A stretch of DNA of 62,955 bases, counting the filler, from Syncephalis fuscata S228 (Eukaryota; Fungi; Zoopagomycota), in the NCBI GenBank assembly GCA_025786725.1. It is 4 parts of 4 records of this genome, joined end to end, with 100 filler letters (N's around TTAATTAATTAA, not from the genome) between each part and the next. Parts side by side here need not be neighbours in the genome. Positions count along the whole stretch, not along the records: positions 52,098 to 62,955 come from JAHLTZ010000289.1; 3 more parts are not named here. One strand, 5' to 3'. Shown here one piece after another: positions 4,819 through 62,955 of the stretch. Below the pieces are notes generated by a model, which made no database searches, was not told the origin of the DNA, and worked only from the letters and a program-made list of their open reading frames with translations. A program made the translations under genes and the position numbers. How positions within the stretch are numbered: position 1 is the first letter of the stretch; each line of letters starts with the position of its first letter.

Positions 4819-6326
4819 AAAAGCTAATTTACCTTGGAGTTTATCGATTTTAAACAACATAATAACAATGATCATTTTTAATGACCGTTACTAATTTTTT
4901 TAACCAATATTTATAAAAAATTAATACTGCATTATCTTTAATACACTTTAATTGTACATATTAGCAAGCACTTGCCATTATTTAACAATCATACTAGCCA
5001 ATAAACAATTTTATTTACATGTATATCATTGAAACAAGTACTCACAGATTTATTATTGCTCGTGACTGCCAATTGTTTTCTTTTGCCCAATTCTTATCGC
5101 CGTCTTTCAGTTTTACAATCCACAATATAACTTCTTGCCTATTATGTATAGCATTATACTTACTTGCGGTCAATCTTGTGCAAACTTGGTTTTTGGCCTT
5201 ATTTCACCACTACCCCTTATTCTTGTATCCCCCATCGGATTACAGCCGCCTGCAGCAACAGCCAGATCGATACTTGAGTAAGGAGACAGGTAAGATGTTA
5301 ATGCAAATGGCACTTACACTACCGCAGCAAATAGCCATAAATTATACTTTCTAAATATTTAGTACTATAATTAATACATTCAGCCATCTTTATGGTTTAA
5401 AATGCTTTTATGTAGGTACGTACATATGTGTATACATACATGATAACGTACCAATGACAAGTATTAATTTGGCAATAGGCCACTCACGTCGTGCGCCTAC
5501 TTGCATCATTACCTGCTTATTTTTCAAGTTATTAGCTTGGCAAAAAGTATTATTAATGGCGTGTTATGGCTAGCATAATGATTATAAGCCATTCAATATT
5601 TGCTATTCATAATAAACAACACTATTAACAAAGCAACAAAAGCATTTTTATTATTATTATTAGTAGTAGTATTAGTAGTAGTAGTAGTAGTAAATAAACA
5701 GTATTCAATAGGCTTTTGCAGAGGCTTTGGTCATACGACCTTTTTTATAGCCACACGCAACAAGTTTTCGATCACTGCACCTCTCAAGCGTTTTCATCCT
5801 CCGCCAACTGTCTTTTGTCGAATTCTTCTTCCGCTTTTCTTTACCGCCATCGTTGTTCGTCACCGAGTCGCTTTCCTTGAAATAGTTGGTTTACCATTCG
5901 TTTCTGGTTGGATAATTAAGCACGCAACGTGGTTTCTAGTCTTTATTAATACAGTTTATTTATTACTATTGACTCATCAGGCATTACGCCGTTATTTGGC
6001 CGTCAATACACCCACTCTTCTACTCGCTCTCTCTCTCTATTTCTCTCTCTATTTCTTCTCCTAATCTAATATTTCAAAAGCAACTGAATGTGGTACGAAT
6101 CTATCTAAACTGGTTCGATAGAAGAGGCTTATCTATTGTCTGGGCCTGCGAAGTGTCCCATTGATATCCTGTCCCTTATTAGTCATCCTGCGCAAGTCAT
6201 CTGTGTCCCAACGTATACTTTTGTAGAATCTCCTTTATATCTAATACTAAACAACTCCATAGTCTACACGTATATAGCTACTGGTAGTCTTTAATCTTTT
6301 CTTTATTCATTGACCTTGCCGTATCA

Positions 6327-54303: not shown

Positions 54304-55829
54304 AGCAATTAAGGATATGACAGGCATTACAGTGTCTGTCGCCACAGCACCCTTTTGAATTGTGTGTTGACAAGTGTAACGATCATGTTATATTTACACA
54401 CACACACACACACAACGCTACGCAATCCGATCAAGTACATACTCTGATATCTTATTATAGATGACGTGTAATCACCGACAACGAATGCGTATTTGTGTAT
54501 CGCCGTTTCTGCGTGTATAATTGGTGTTGTTTTTGTTTTCTTCGTTTTTAGTGCGCTGATTTACCTTATGCTTCGTTTCGTATTATTTCATCGAGATGTG
54601 CCTCTTTCTATTTTCATTCTTCCTATGCACACCGACAACAACATGCATGCTGCACACATTATATATATATTTTATATAACCATTTATAATTTGTTGGCGC
54701 CTTTTTGTGACATTTCTGCAACTCATTTGATATTCAGCTACAATCTATCAACACGAGTTGACCATTGAACCTATTCAATTAACCAACCAACCACTATTAG
54801 TACTAACCACAGCTATATTATGATACTTGGGAATGATGCTACAATATTAATCGTTTTTATTAACTATTAGCAAACAGTTTGTTTTTTTCTGTTATTCCAC
54901 TAATATCATACAATCATAAATAAATCTATCATTGAAAAATACTAATACTAGTAATACTAGGGAGCTATTTTACTTTGAATTCCTGTCCTTCAGTTTAAGG
55001 ATAAAAATATCCATAATTTGAATAGTAAACCGTCGATCAGTTTTACTACTGAGAAGTGCTATTTGTTGAAGCAATGCCACATCAACTTTGATTGAATCAA
55101 TCAATATTCGATATTAGTGTTAATAAATATTATAGTATTTCATGTCACTTACAATAAAATATAATAGATAGATAAATGTTAATCCATGTTATTATTGCTG
55201 TAAAGTATTGAAAGCATTATAATTTAGTGATTTAATATAACTCACCACCCAGTTACATGTTTAGTAGAACAACAAATGTGTAGTTCAATCAAGTAAAGGA
55301 TGTCAGCTTTGATCTTTTGACACTAAATTACATGAGTCTACTAATAACTTAATACATGGAAGTTATTATACGTTGCCTTTTACATTTTTATTTACTCGTT
55401 TCACTCTTATTTTTCTATTGCTATCTTATTGTTCTATTTAGTGCTATATTATACAATAATACCGAATATAACAATATAAATAGCATACGTATTTGAACAT
55501 CAATAAATAACATGATTCAATCCCTAGACTTTATTTCTTTTACTTTACATCAACACCTGTTCAAGTAACCTCAGCGGCATGCCGTATCTTCTGGCTACAA
55601 CTGCCGCCACAAGATCTTCCTGATAAAGAAACTCAACCTATCATAATTGCATATGATGGAGGCCATTTGCTTCATCAATGGTTGGCAAATAAACTGCGCC
55701 TACCAAGTTGATATTAAGAATGCCTAAGAGAATGGTGAACATCAGAAATGCTAGTCGTCCTACCTTCTTGCGACCATAGACAAGTATCTTACATAGTAAA
55801 TATGCCCAAAATACAACAGTAAAAGATTA

Positions 55830-55967
55830 GAAAATAGAAGAGACCATTCAGATACAAGAACCCACACTGTATGTAGTAACAACAATAACAACTACAGAAT
55901 GACATGAAATCATAATTATATGGCTTTTATTAATACTCAATCAATCTTTCTACGCATAGCCAACAAC
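55830..55967 (+). repeat. ~135-bp direct repeat, copy 1 (copy 2 at 59922-60057)
   Basis: Shared AGATACAAGAACCCACACTGTA(T/C)GTAGTAACAACAATAACAA...ATATGGCTTTTATTAATA...ATAGCCAACAAC. Confidence 0.85.
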
Positions 55968-57703
55968 AATAATAATCAGCCTTATGAATTGCAAAGTAGT
56001 TAAATGAATATTGTAGCTATGTTTGTTGTGAATAACAGCATGACTTCAATTGAAACAAATTTTGCTTTGAAAACTCAAAATATGAGAGTCAAAGTAGAAT
56101 TGGGAAATTTTGAAAAGCTAAAAATTCTTGATAAGAAAAAAAGTTAATTACAATAAATGCAACAAATTCTATTTTAAACTTTGTTTATTTACATAATCTA
56201 ATTAATGTAGCAATATTAACGGCAATGCCAATAGTGTTTTATTTGCCAAAATACTTCCAACAACTTACTTGTGGTAAATGTGGCTAACAAATACAATACA
56301 AAAATATGCTCTGTAAGAATTAGTATTAATAGTATTGAACTGGTAGTTAATGTTAAAACAAATGTTTATATTGAATAAATACAAACTACTAATGAAACAA
56401 CTATCAAAGTAAATAAAGTGTAATGCAAACAAAATAATTTAATTAATAATTTTTTTAAAATATAAAATTGACCAACAGATAAAATTATACTTGTTTGTTT
56501 AAAGCGTTTCAGATATCAGATTTAGCAAGTAAACAATTTCGAATTACATAAAAGTATTACTGTCTTGATTAACTTGAGCTAATTAGTTGATGTATCAAGC
56601 AAAAGTGGAGATATGCAAAATAAAACTGTCAATATGGCATTTATCATTGATAAACTAAAACAATTTACTTGAACATTTATTCTTAAACGCCACAATAGTC
56701 GCTTCAATATTCTAATTTAAAAGAGTCGTGGAACATGGCAAAAGAAGCTTAAGAGGGTGTTGTGGTGGATTACTTAAATTACTTGATTTGTATTAAATCT
56801 TATGGTAATTTTATTAACTAAATAAAGATAACCTTTTTTCATAATATTAAGCACAATATTGGTTGTTTAATGTAATTTAACTGTTAAATAACTATAATAG
56901 CCTCACATTTAAACTAAATATCCGCTTTAGTGAAAATGAAACTGAGTGGTGAGTGTCATTGGTGATAAAATATTTATTTACCATTATTATTGCACTGTAG
57001 ATATCTATCCTGTATACATATACTATATATCCGCGTATATCACTAATATTGTAAATTGTAAAAGCTATATTAACAAAGGCTAAAAGTTTACTGCCAGCTG
57101 GATTCTTTAATAGATTTTGATTTATTTTGCTCATTACTTTTAGTAAATTGCATTAGTATAGTTTTGCTATTACTATTCATGTATTTGTTCTGTCTATTTA
57201 TTTTATTTTATAGTATTCTATGCTTTATTGCCATGTTTTATTAAAAAAGCTTATTTATTCTAATTTCAGCACAATGTTATGTAGCTATATGATAATAATA
57301 GCTTTGCTACTATCCATACCAATATATGTCTATAGCTTAGACAATATAATTATACACATTTTGTTAATTTAACTATTTGATTAATAGTTATTAAGCATTG
57401 AATGCAAATAGAACATGGTTATAAATATAGCAATTCGATTGTATATAGTTAAGATGAAACCATAAGTTTATTACTATAAACTTGCACAGTTGAATAGGGA
57501 CAACTAGATGCAATCTTGCTAATAAAATAATGATCTCATTGATTAAAGACTGGATAAACCGGAGCATTGGCCAAAACTTGATATATAAATAGACTGGACG
57601 GCGTAGTTGTCAAATAGTCTTGCTTTGCACCGAATATATACCTAAAGTGTATTGGAATAGTGGCTTGATTGCACTACCGATGCTGATGTCTTGAAACCAT
57701 CGA

Positions 57704-58678
57704 TTAGTCTGTATTTACAAATAAAAATATTATATGCCATATAATTAGTGTATAAGGCATCAATATTAATATTAAATAATCGGTACAATCAGTAAATGGC
57801 ATAATTAATATATGGTCAGTCGACGTATAATATAACTTACCCCCTATTAATAATAAGTTATTTATATGCATAGTACATGACATAGTTAGTACATAGTTAG
57901 TTAACATACAACACAACTTACAGTCTATTAATATTGTTATTTATACACATAATACATGGTACATAATTAGTGCATAATCAGTTGATATATAATATAACTT
58001 ACCCCCTATTAATAATAAGTTATTTATATGCATAGTACATGACATAGTTAGTACATAGTTAGTTAACATACAACACAACTTACACCCTATTAATATCAAG
58101 TTGTTTATACGCATAATACGTGGTACATAATTAGTGCATAATCAGTTGATATATAATATAACTTACAATCTATTAAGTTATTTATACGCATAATACATGG
58201 TGCATAGTCAGTGCATAATTAGTCAATATATAATACAACTTACATTCTATTAATATTAAATTATTTATACGCATAATACATGGTACATAATTAGTGTATA
58301 ATCAGTCAATATATAATATAACTTACTGCCTATTAATATTAAGTTGTTTATACGCATAATACGTGGTACATAATTAGTACATGATCAGTCAATAATAGTA
58401 TAACTTACAACCTATTAGTATTAAGTTATTTATGCGCGTAATAAACGGTACATAATTAGTGCATAGTCAGTCAATATACAATACAACTTACTCCCTATTA
58501 ATATTAAGTTAGAAATACCGTTAGTAAGCATGATAATATAATATATCTATTGTCATCGAAACATACGACGAACCAAAGTTGATTTAGCATCCACCATAGC
58601 TGGTTTAGCATCTACTATGGTTGTAGCGGCTATCAAAGCCACAAGGACGATGCAAATAACGGCAATGGAAAGCTTCAT
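57704..58678 (-). CDS. Secreted prepro-peptide gene with nine 3-nt micro-exons; predicted 47 aa MKLSIAVICIVLVALIAATTIVDAKPAMVDAKSTLVRR-SCKYWWDWD
   Basis: Exon 1 58678-58567; 3-nt exons at 58494-92, 58411-09, 58329-27, 58246-44, 58169-67, 58086-84, 58005-03, 57924-22, 57843-41; last exon from 57708. Donors GTATGT/GTAAGT, acceptors TAATAG/CAG, CTAA(T/C) branch-like motifs. Confidence 0.8.
57790..58510. repeat. ~81-bp tandem repeat, 9 units, each one intron plus one 3-nt exon
   Basis: Recurring AACTTAC-NNN-CTATTA every 77-83 bp; the 3 nt are the most variable part of the unit. Confidence 0.92.
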
Positions 58679-59921
58679 GGTGATATTGATTTGTTAAGAC
58701 AAACAAATAAAAGAGATAGTAGAGTGTGGTTGGTATAGAGTGGAGAGTAGAGTGTGTATAGCAAGAAGTAGAGTGTAATGATGATATCGCAGTTGGTTGT
58801 GTATATTTTGTGGGCTATTTAAACTTATGGCTATGTAGAGATACTAGTATACTGTAATATATGAGGTATATTTTTGGTGTATAATATGAACCAATAAAGC
58901 AATCCAGGTGATGGTCTGAAATGCGCATGCACCAATAGATTCATGGCGTGACAGCATGCTTTCCAGCTTTGATTTTGACCTGCTCGGCATTTACACAAAT
59001 GACGTAACAATGTTTATAATCCAGTACATATGCGATAGAGATAGATATACTAGCCTGTATTTTTGTCGCATGGTTTAACTATTTGCTAAAAACAAGTACA
59101 TTATTTGGTTTTGTAAAAATTATAATGATGTCTTTGCTGCTGCTTCCACTGAATGACTCGACCCCAATGTCTACATGCATACAAAATAGCACACAACACT
59201 GATGCAAAAACAAGTTTAATATATGAAACTAGTATTTTTTTATATAGCTCTTTACTTCTATACATAAGCTAATTATAATTTTTAAATTATAAAGCGTGTT
59301 GATTGGTACATGTGTGCATTTCATTCGACACTATGCTCATTGTTATGGAATAGCAATTGTTTTGAATTTACAAATGCATCATGCCACCTAGACATATTGT
59401 GCTACATGTCGTGCAACTACTATCATCCAAATGGCGGTTAATTCAAATTATCTGAAATTGACTATACAATAAGTACTATTTGTAGGGTGATGCATCACAG
59501 CATTTTGAGCAATGGAACATTCCAACATGTCATTTTCGTCGTCAGTTTTCAGTTGTAAACTAGATTGCATCGGATAAATTACACGCAATGCAATATGCAG
59601 ACACTAGATTAGACACAGTAAAAAGCTCTAACCAATTACCAACAAGCTTGAGTGCATAATGTTAATGGATTGCATATAAACCGGTAATCATCCAAGGCCT
59701 AACTGCTGCTTATATTTCTGAAACTTAATTCTGGCAAGTCAAGCAAGATGGAATATAGAAGAACAAGCCAAAGCAGAAACCAATGAAAAAAACAATCAGC
59801 AGCTCAAAGGCTTACTGGTTTAACCTATAGCAAATCATTACAGTTATGCTATGCTGAACTGCGTTTATCAAAAGTCGACTGTTGCTGATGCGACCAGAAC
59901 GGTAGCAATGATGGAATATTG

Positions 59922-60057
59922 GAAAATAGAATACCATTTAGATACAAGAACCCACACTGTACGTAGTAACAACAATAACAATTGCGGAATGGCATGTAAT
60001 TACAATCATATGGCTTTTATTAATATTTGATTAATTTTTCTACATATAGCCAACAAC
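59922..60057 (+). repeat. ~135-bp direct repeat, copy 2
   Basis: Matches 55830-55967. Confidence 0.85.
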
Positions 60058-60301
60058 GGCAATGATCAATCTCAAATATTTCAAAGAAATCAAGTAGAAT
60101 GTTACATTGTTTAAATATTTAATATTATTACCGATACAATGTTCAGTTACATTTAATCAATTTTATGGAAATAATAATGGACAATAATATTACATTAGTA
60201 TTTATTGTGAATGATCATTTAAACACAAATTAATTTAATCAATTCGTCAATTATTTAAATCATTATTTCTATTTCATATTGATTGTTTGGCTTGTTTATT
60301 A

Positions 60302-60311
60302 TTGTTGTTGT

Positions 60312-60353
<42 letters not shown>
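60302..60353. repeat. (TTG)/(TTGCTG) microsatellite
   Basis: Read directly, just upstream of the CDK start codon. Confidence 0.9.
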
Positions 60354-60386: not shown

Positions 60387-62105
60387 ATGGAGGAAGGCGA
60401 ACTAGACTTAGACGCTAAACTTGCCGCTTCTAAAAACAACGGGCAGCCTAGTCATCGCGAAAATCTTGTACATTCTAGTACAAGCGAGTCAATCGCGTCA
60501 GGAGAACAGCAAACAGCACTAGGCCGGTCTAAATGGGAGTCTGATCACGAGTATAGCGATGACAATGAGAATAATACAACACTTAGAAAGCGAAAGCCGG
60601 CAAAAACCGAACGTAAACGATTAAAACGACGAAAAGAAACTGTAACAATGGCAGAAGAAGAAAAGACGATTGATACAATGGAAGTAACATCTAAAGCACA
60701 CCAAGGACCGCTCAATCAATCATCTGATATGGCGACAGCAGCAATGCATCAGCTATCGGTAAAAGAAGTATGGAAGCCACGACCACAGCCACAGCCACCG
60801 ACCATTCGACGATGTGGATCGGTCGATCGATATGAACGACTGAATCGTATTGATGAAGGCTCTTATGGCGTTGTTTATCGGGCACGTGATCGTGAAACCG
60901 GCGAAATAGTTGCGCTAAAACGACTCAAATGCGAGCATCAAGATCGAGTAGGCTTTCCAGTTACTGATCTACGTGAAATTCATACACTTTTATGGGTCAA
61001 ACATGAGAATATTGTCAATGTACGGGAGATTGTTGTAGGGAGTGGTACACCACCAAAGTAAGTGTAAACAATAACTATAGTAATAATAATAATAATAATA
61101 GCTGGATCATTAATACACTAATGATTAGAGTATTTATTGTGATGGATTTCCTTGAACATGACCTAAAGACGTTAATGACGGGTATGCGCTCGCCATTCAT
61201 GCAGTCGGAGGTAAAAACTCTTATGTTACAGCTATTGTCGGCTGTGAGTACACTGCATCGTAATTGGATTATTCATCGTGATTTAAAAACAAGTAATTTG
61301 TTGATGAATAATCGCGGTCGTGTTAAAGTAGCCGATTTTGGTTTGGCGCGTAAATTTGGTAGTCCACTTAATGCAATGACCATCCCTGTTGTGACACTAT
61401 GGTATCGGTAAGCCGTATGCATAACAGGTGCCTTAATAGCAACGCTAACGTAGTGACGATAAATGACCAATATTAGTGCGCCAGAACTGCTCTTAGGCGC
61501 TAAGGAGTATACGACGGCGGTTGATATGTGGTCAATTGGTTGTATATTCGGAGAAATGCTACTTAATGAACCGATGATACCAGGTCGTGGTGAGATAGAT
61601 CAGTTGAATAAGGTAAAAAAATAGGAATTAAATACATAATGGATATTAATAGATCTACAGATATTTCAATTACTTGGGACACCCAATGAAGAGATTTGGC
61701 CCGGATTAAATCAATTACCAAGTGCCAAAAGTATTAATTTTGTAGAGCAGCCGTAAGTAGTATTGATAACAAAATAAATGGATTAATTAATCGGTATGGA
61801 TAGATATAATATGCTTCGATCCAAATTTAAATACGTTACAGCAAACGGAATAGATTTGCTGGGACAGTTTCTTACTTATGATCCGGAGAAGCGGATTACG
61901 GCAGAGAAAGCATTACAGCATCCGTATTTTAGGTAAGTGTTGGGCTATGATGAATCTTAGATGATTAATGAATACAATGAACAGCGAGAATCCACCGCCA
62001 CAGCACCCGGATCTCTTTCCTAGCTGGCCATCAAAAGCGTCTAAAGAACGAGCCGGTGCTATGGTATCACCTGTACTTATTGTTCCCGAAGCAAATATGG
62101 AATAA
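60387..62105 (+). CDS. CDK11: CDK11/PITSLRE-type cyclin-dependent kinase, multi-exon
   Basis: [84 protein letters not shown]. Confidence 0.9.
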
Positions 62106-62329
62106 AATAGCTTGTTTAATTGTTATACTATTGATAGATCGTAGTTGATACGAATAACTGTATGACTCAAGACACAGCATAAATTAATGTTGTTTTATTA
62201 CAGACTATGATTAAAGAAAGCATTTGTGAAATTGGCATTATTAGCTGTATCGTCACAATTGATTTATTGGATTTAAATGTATATAAAAGCTATATTTACT
62301 GCAACTATGTCCATGTTGAATGTGCGAGT

Positions 62330-62955
62330 TGAATGGTACAAAAATTACCGATCGGCTGCTGAGAGTCATTCAGATTGCATTGAAACCATCTCTGTAAGTT
62401 AAACCTTGAGATAATTGTTTATAATATCGTTAACCATCACGTTAATACGGGGTTGTCCTCGAATATGCTCAAACTTGTTAGAAGACGTAATTGGTTCTGG
62501 TCGTGCATTTTTGTAATTGTATAGCACAATCTCCTTTCCGTTGTTCACGCAGATATCTAGTAATTACATATTTAGTAAATCAGAAATTATTATCTATCGC
62601 TTACTTTCTGCTTTTAAATCGTACAGCCATCCCAAGTTGTATAATTCGTTCATGCCTAGTTTGCAATTAATTATTAAAGTATGATAGCATTGTTTAAATA
62701 CTTACCATCTTGAATTGTTTTCCCAAACTTGCCGATTAGCAATCATTTTCTCTTAGGAAGCCATTAAAAATGGGTTTATATTGCTGAGATTGACGTGGCA
62801 AATGTTTGGAGCTATATAGCAATGCCATCTTTCAACTTGAAAGAAGTTGTGGAGCGAAGAATCAAATCCTTGAGAGATGAAGGCTTTGTTTTCTTGGGTT
62901 AAACTTTGGGAGACTCTGTTTTGGTATATCAATTAATTAGTGGTATTTAATAAAT
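62330..62955 (-). pseudogene. Degenerate protein-kinase-like gene fragment
   Basis: Spliced LYNLGWLYDLKAE^NICVNNGKEIVLYNY resembles kinase subdomains VIb-VII without HRD/DFG; in-frame stop and frameshift upstream. Confidence 0.45.

Follow-up and report, generated by a model that had tools for sequence, protein, structure and literature searches.

The minus strand of the Syncephalis fuscata S228 DNA analyzed here (62,955 nt, filler included, assembly GCA_025786725.1; hereafter the window, along which all positions are counted) carries nine units of the form TAG|NNN|GTAAGT between 58494 and 57841. The question raised by this locus is whether such units are genuine three-nucleotide exons and, if so, what product they would encode. 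A preliminary description had proposed a gene with nine 3-nt exons and introns that are all phase 1, coding for a secreted peptide, and had suggested that combinatorial exon skipping turns this single locus into a peptide library.

The gene is absent from the deposited annotation, and none is annotated at the matching place in a second contig, L001 (GCA_025786725.1), which is 98.5% identical to the window piece over 10.8 kb and appears to be the same locus in another isolate or haplotype. Coding starts with a 112-nt prepro exon (exon 1, 58567-58678, ATG at 58678, end at 58567, donor GTATGT), whose hydropathy indicates a hydrophobic signal peptide (about residues 1-24). A pro-segment follows, and the exon ends in phase 1 with a first Arg and the first base of a second Arg. 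The nine phase-1 micro-exons come next, the higher coordinate of each marking its first base: GGA (58492-58494, completing the RR site), GTT (58409-58411), GCA (58327-58329), AAT (58244-58246), ATT (58167-58169), GGT (58084-58086), GGG (58003-58005), ACT (57922-57924) and GGG (57841-57843; GCG in L001). The last exon adds two bases and the stop codon (AC + TAA, 57704-57708; TA in place of AC in L001). Ten introns of 72-132 nt each would separate these exons. Intron 1 (58495-58566, 72 nt) resembles the repeat unit at its 3' end, and its counterpart in the paralogue L123 is spliced in the deposited model P0133; introns 2-9 (57844-58491) are copies of one 74-80 nt unit, with a GTAAGT donor and a TAATAG acceptor, so that the array is in effect a tandem intron repeat of about 80 nt. 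Intron 10 (57709-57840, 132 nt) resembles two fused partial units, possibly the trace of a lost exon. Joined in order, the exons encode 47 residues: a signal peptide, a short pro-segment, RR and the 9-mer SCKYWWDWD.

The number of units seems striking at first, as a Markov model of the piece expects 0.26 of them (maximum of 3 in 200 runs) where nine are seen; since the units are copies of one repeat, this count is not independent evidence on its own, and tandem copying means that unit number proves little. We read the units as introns and exons because of three other features. Internal AG is absent from introns 2-10 (shuffle P of about 0.03 for the unit and 0.006 for intron 10), and across the 46 introns of the family 17 internal AG are found against 131 expected. 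Moreover, each of introns 2-9 holds two branch-like CTRAY motifs. Finally, the exons differ between units by 65% and the introns by 13%. With this evidence and that of the paralogues described below, the predicted micro-exon structure is confirmed as real, and the nine 3-nt exons of the preliminary description are borne out, as is its phase-1 reading. The donor, the frame and the stop are fixed because homology to intronless family members begins at the TAA, because all seven aligned sequences have their stop in one and the same column, and because exon 1 ends in phase 1 in all array genes; we take anatomy, frame and stop as established. Readings in phase 2 and from a different ATG frame of exon 1 were rejected on account of a nonsense change in L001 and of the paralogues. 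Phase 0 was ruled out as well, given the start of the 3' homology at the TAA, the common stop column and the weak donor within exon 1 that it would need.

Exon 1 used alone as a query retrieved four proteins, all from S. fuscata and 71-77% identical to its product, with the same signal peptide and a pro-segment ending in LVRR; a fifth paralogue was located in L126. The window gene and its five paralogues have a common prepro region, common 5' and 3' UTRs and a stop at the same place; the window gene is thus, within the one species that the comparison covers, a real member of a Syncephalis family of predicted small secreted prepro-peptides. The common 5' flank and UTR occupy 58679-58834 and contain a TATA-like element (58816-58823), presumably functional, 145 nt upstream of the ATG; L123, L124 and L125 have it likewise at 144-145 nt. 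The common 3' UTR (57449-57703), intronless members included, is 80-86% identical to L125 and L126, the similarity starting at or just before the stop codon. A 21-nt tandem duplication in the pro-segment (58572-58612) is missing from the paralogues. The RR pair is present in five of the six genes and absent from L126a, cleavage being predicted; in that intronless gene (L126:3752-3961, plus strand) two cysteines stand where the dibasic site would be. The signal peptide and RR support the secreted-peptide reading of the preliminary description.

Behind this one prepro region lie mature regions of 9, 15, 31 and 38-46 residues. Three paralogues (L125, L126a and L126b) lack introns, and their mature peptides are Cys-rich and 38-46 residues long, while L123 and L124 carry arrays of at least 15 and 28 micro-exons, respectively, with homologous introns, and are wrongly annotated. 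The window 9-mer has no counterpart among the intronless genes, and none of these matched the 15-mer of L123. The deposited models of the array genes, P0134 for L124 (L124:5001-7948, plus strand) and P0133 for L123 (L123:5001-6889, plus strand), run into an intron after the first few exons. No combination of canonical splice sites reproduced the P0134 model; the closest attempt uses the 3-nt exon CTC together with another 3-nt exon that is displaced by two bases, which as support for micro-exons is a weak hint. Both genes also contain a long intron (579 nt in L124 and 416 nt in L123) with a common 93-nt stretch of 85% identity, and L123 has an extra candidate exon at 5240 with a weak donor. 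As for the intronless genes, homology in L126 ends in six A, and L125 retains the promoter and the downstream flank. Most simply, the intronless paralogues would be copies of spliced mRNA that lost their introns through cDNA; the signs are weak, and the direction of this change is one that we infer. Adjoining the two intronless peptide genes of L126 is a gene with a Dicty_CAR match (cAMP-receptor-like GPCR; L126:990-2291, minus strand), and a receptor-ligand link between them is speculation.

The intronless members offer a way to ask in which order micro-exons are joined. L124 has 28 of them (26 of 3 nt and two of 6 nt, one being followed by a GC donor), which in genomic order encode a 31-residue peptide with six cysteines at gaps of 2,3,7,3,3; the corresponding gaps are 2,3,11,5,3 in the intronless P0135 and 2,3,13,3,3 for the last six cysteines of L126a. 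Alignment scores of 68 and 63 exceeded the maxima of 53 and 50 reached in 3000 shuffles of exon order (P=0.0003), and at the DNA level runs of 14-15 identical bases span four micro-exons (P=0.001). The six-cysteine framework was kept in 0 of 200,000 order shuffles, was broken by 18 of the 28 possible single skips, and survived random inclusion at 50% in 1 of 100,000 trials. Because the intronless paralogues stand in for a cDNA of L124, these comparisons, in which we regard the order dependence of the homology as established, show that full in-order inclusion would be the selected product, at least for L124. For the window gene, ordered inclusion would be an extension from L124 by homology. With 28 exons each included at 95%, 24% of transcripts would be full length, and skipped by-products of such a gene may be abundant.

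We then considered how the arrays change. In a tree of the 46 introns, which has few columns and many unresolved forks, the window-gene introns form one group and those of L123 another, the pattern that expansion or homogenisation of each array in place would produce. L123 has three GAG units in tandem, its units 3 and 4 having identical flanks, and L124 has duplicated blocks within its array. In the window gene, pairs of units whose flanks differ by 5-8% differ at two to three of the three exon bases. Comparison with L001 adds to this picture: the two sequences do not differ over array exons 1-8 and introns 2-8 (628 nt, no substitution), and from exon 8 to intron 1 they differ by one substitution in 645 nt, while the intergenic DNA nearby, outside repeats, differs by 0.6-0.7%. 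In the window gene, in turn, intron 9 together with exon 9 is an exact copy of intron 7 with exon 7, and L001 departs from it there at five sites. This is most simply read as a conversion event that would have changed one residue, although an assembly error in either sequence may also account for it. With GCG as exon 9 and a last exon starting in TA, the L001 peptide would end in DCV instead of DWD with the stop position unchanged, and its cysteines at positions 2 and 8 could form a loop. Of the 29 mature-peptide bases, 3 differ between the alleles, compared with 6 of the 831 bases in introns (Fisher P=0.0025, with one single conversion event among the differences). Intron 1 of L001 also has an extra AG straight after a CTAAC motif (window 58519); it may act as an alternative acceptor, in which case a stop would follow.

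The immediate flanks are more divergent, the 5' flank differing from L001 by 11.5% (the first 122 nt of the 5' flank and UTR) and the 3' flank by 5.9%. In the two end alignments, at least one of the two states is found in a paralogue at 37 of the 39 differing columns, a pattern that points to exchange between members of the family. The visible variation of these arrays is genomic and appears to consist of unit duplication, block duplication and conversion; genomic exchange we treat as given. Misalignment between introns would add, remove or overwrite whole codons with no frameshift, and selection would then act on the exon bases.

Altogether, ordered full inclusion combined with genomic diversification in steps of one codon is the best explanation of the window gene, and we hold it to be quite probable. 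According to this model, exon 1 would supply the conserved signal peptide and a Kex2-type dibasic site, the ten short phase-1 introns would be removed and the nine 3-nt exons joined in order, each residue of the mature 9-mer being built from two neighbouring exons; both splicing in the living cell and cleavage are predictions here. The array would serve as a germ-line codon-step editor, in which near-identical introns misalign, unequal crossing-over and gene conversion add, delete, copy and overwrite codons with the frame kept, and exon bases would diverge much faster than their flanks. Reverse-copied spliced mRNA would give rise to the intronless paralogues.

This model has to be weighed against the skipping library of the preliminary description, in which combinatorial inclusion, as in Tuber nank genes and schistosome MEGs, is what makes the peptides differ. 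The arithmetic offered for it was right: skipping ATT gives SCKWWDWD, and skipping GCA alone creates a TAA stop. Moreover, every skip keeps the frame, RR is retained with any of the first three exons or with none, and the 512 inclusion patterns yield 307 distinct peptides; every single skip of L123 stays open, short unstructured members could tolerate skips, a fungal precedent exists in Tuber, and the diverse 3-nt arrays of recognition-type genes discussed below are nearly free of stop triplets. On the other hand, the L124 framework requires ordered inclusion, and the intronless paralogues resemble complete ordered products with a full cysteine framework. Phase 1 ties each residue to the neighbouring exon, 64 of the 512 patterns stop early, and both cysteines of the L001 allele are kept in 46 of the 512 only. 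Nor are the skip junctions of the window gene depleted of stops (1 of 55, P=0.63); here, as in two phase-1 kinase arrays, a search for selection against such stops gave a negative result. Thus the diversifying role proposed earlier is retained, while skipping as its main mode is not, as the visible variation is genomic; we consider a skipping library unlikely, though skipping may occur at some rate in the window gene.

A rather different doubt is whether this particular copy still matters: the family could be real and the window gene a copy that is shrinking or decaying and makes a 9-residue product without function. Its mature region is the shortest of the family, the pro-segment carries the 21-nt duplication, intron 10 looks like fused remnants and one cysteine has been overwritten in the window allele, but all 20 splice sites are intact in both the window gene and L001, both read without interruption to the family stop, the TATA-like element is retained, and the substitution rate from exon 8 to intron 1 is below that of the intergenic DNA nearby, all of which makes decay very improbable. 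We give still less weight to the possibility that the units are a plain unspliced AT-rich repeat, read through for 41 residues, or a phase-0 array leading into a longer last exon. Tandem copying does inflate the motif count, both alleles stay open for 41 codons in phase 0, and the protein collection holds no product of the window gene; yet the introns exclude AG, the joined exons match intronless genes in an order-dependent manner, the paralogues fix the stop, and phase 0 requires a weak donor within exon 1, so that this reading is barely credible. A word search with the exon 1 read-through of 41 residues found no match in the protein collection. Beyond our preferred model of ordered inclusion with codon-step genomic change, a bolder version is possible, if rather doubtful: Syncephalis would own a dedicated peptide-diversifying system of one codon per exon, with introns as recombination handles within and between loci, skipping as an added RNA layer and reverse transcription fixing spliced variants, and the array would be a general fungal device, of independent origin in several phyla and missed by annotation.

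Codon-sized micro-exons have been described before in fungi. According to PMC4986451 and PMC13449251, which cite Iotti et al. 2012, the nank (NACHT-ankyrin) genes of Tuber melanosporum are reported to have codon-sized micro-exons and alternative splicing. They resemble the present genes in being fungal, in having tens of codon-sized exons per gene and in their link to diversification, and a canonical tandem run of 3-nt exons is found here too. However, the Tuber host gene is a large intracellular NLR, whereas the window gene encodes a 47-residue secreted precursor that is not NACHT-ankyrin, and its array makes up the whole mature region of a tiny secreted peptide. Diversity in Tuber is ascribed to alternative splicing, whereas here all introns are phase 1 and the paralogues point to ordered inclusion and genomic exchange. 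In Coprinopsis, lone exons of up to 3 nt have been reported. Schistosoma MEGs have exons of 3-81 bp, introns of up to 5 kb and alternative splicing (PMC10526429); as here, they belong to a parasite and combine a signal peptide and secretion with a frame-preserving micro-exon coding region. In contrast, nearly all exons of the present genes are 3 nt, with homologous tandem introns of about 80 nt (72-132 nt). The exon 1 search matched only S. fuscata, with no homology to MEG proteins or sign of a trematode origin. In the searched library, which is incomplete, we found no literature on micro-exons in Zoopagomycota or Syncephalis, nor any description of an entire mature peptide spelled out one codon at a time by exons.

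Kex2-processed fungal peptide precursors (KEPs), ascomycete alpha-pheromones included (PMC6339444, PMC7329392), are a further comparison. KEPs abound in Zoopagomycota, and the window gene resembles them by its signal peptide, dibasic site and short product; unlike them, it has one mature peptide per precursor and no repeated near-identical cores after dibasic sites. The two cysteines and the tryptophan of the L001 allele recall the alpha-pheromones that have two cysteines, but repeated cores, and Ste13 dipeptides or XA/XP spacers after RR, are missing here, and the paralogues are Cys-rich or Gly-rich, unlike pheromones. Disulfide-stapled helical hairpins were compared as well: the single-sequence model of the mature P0135, with the cysteine pattern CxxCxxxC...CxxxC, is a small helical hairpin (pLDDT of 84) with no structural match above Z 3.5 and none significant, a comparison that leaves aside the window 9-mer. 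The paralogues had no match in Pfam, PDB sequence, Atlas and fold searches (best fold Z of 3.5), and a Pfam scan of exon 1 gave no match either. Conotoxins and amphibian skin peptides combine a conserved prepro region with a hypervariable mature region, and the same pairing of a conserved prepro and a fast-changing mature region is seen here, with no sequence match. To our knowledge, no conserved-prepro peptide family has its mature region encoded at one codon per exon.

Syncephalis species parasitise other fungi, mainly Mucorales. Because a conserved prepro region precedes a hypervariable mature region in a mycoparasite, we infer that the peptides would most likely be directed at the fungal host or at competing microbes, a reading held with modest confidence; a self- or mate-recognition signal takes second place and seems rather unlikely.

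To see how widespread such arrays may be, a generic splice-consensus pattern was run on metagenomes, where at least 120 loci matched. In 33 of them the arrays are diverse, with 6-35 triplet exons and in most cases repeat-like introns, and they adjoin NACHT, HET, ankyrin and kinase domains or weakly matched GTPase domains; such arrays in fungal-type genes include L007, L009, L013, L020, L032, L033, L041, L052, L054 and L055, and also L086, L087, L090, L092, L109, L114, L115, L120, L122 and others. Stop triplets make up 2 of 669 triplets in the diverse arrays against about 30 expected, one array with two stops being left out. The flanking frames suggest phase 0 in several arrays and phase 1 in L009 and L087. 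The kinases concerned resemble those of Glomeromycota. Arrays of 3-nt exons seem far more widespread than in the Tuber report. No clear homology of these loci to the window gene was found, and none of those inspected had the prepro-peptide layout. In many other hits (L003, L019, L021, L031, L035, L043, L074 and similar ones) the repeat is uniform and the supposed exon is a stop triplet, so that they are probably simple repeats with no gene; L018 has 45 identical GGA units.

The structure described here is extreme, with up to 29 introns per 31-residue mature peptide, and offers a test case for how the spliceosome copes with many successive 3-nt exons that must be joined in order. A concrete and testable candidate mechanism also emerges for an old puzzle, namely how mature regions of conserved-prepro families can change fast with no frameshift. 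In addition, the intronless paralogues would be a natural record of the spliced product that could date intron loss or gain. With the window gene missing from the annotation and the models of both array paralogues wrong, a peptide family that belongs to a mould parasite has stayed hidden; it may yield peptides active against fungi or bacteria. Judging by the metagenome scan, similar annotation errors seem to affect many fungal genes of immune type.

Regarding the neighbourhood of the locus, the adjacent gene encodes a CDK11-like kinase identical, over the searched region, to an S. fuscata protein, and the kinase search returned none from other Syncephalis species; a Thamnocephalis contig ends 417 nt upstream of its own kinase. 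The kinase is one 475-residue frame in the window, which the deposited annotation splits into 377 and 93 residues. Positions 60387-62953 differ from L001 by one substitution and 22 gap positions, as is typical of an unpolished assembly, and a hexamer repeat upstream of the kinase (60302-60353) is about 22 nt shorter in L001. On the minus strand of an unrelated right-hand gene, a lone 3-nt candidate exon AAA (62605-62607, CAG/GTAAGC) is present in L001 as well, indels blurring the frame. On the other side, 55501-56000 differs from L001 by 5.6%, and a 161-nt direct repeat with 81% identity (55843-56003 and 59933-60093) brackets a 4-kb stretch with the peptide gene.
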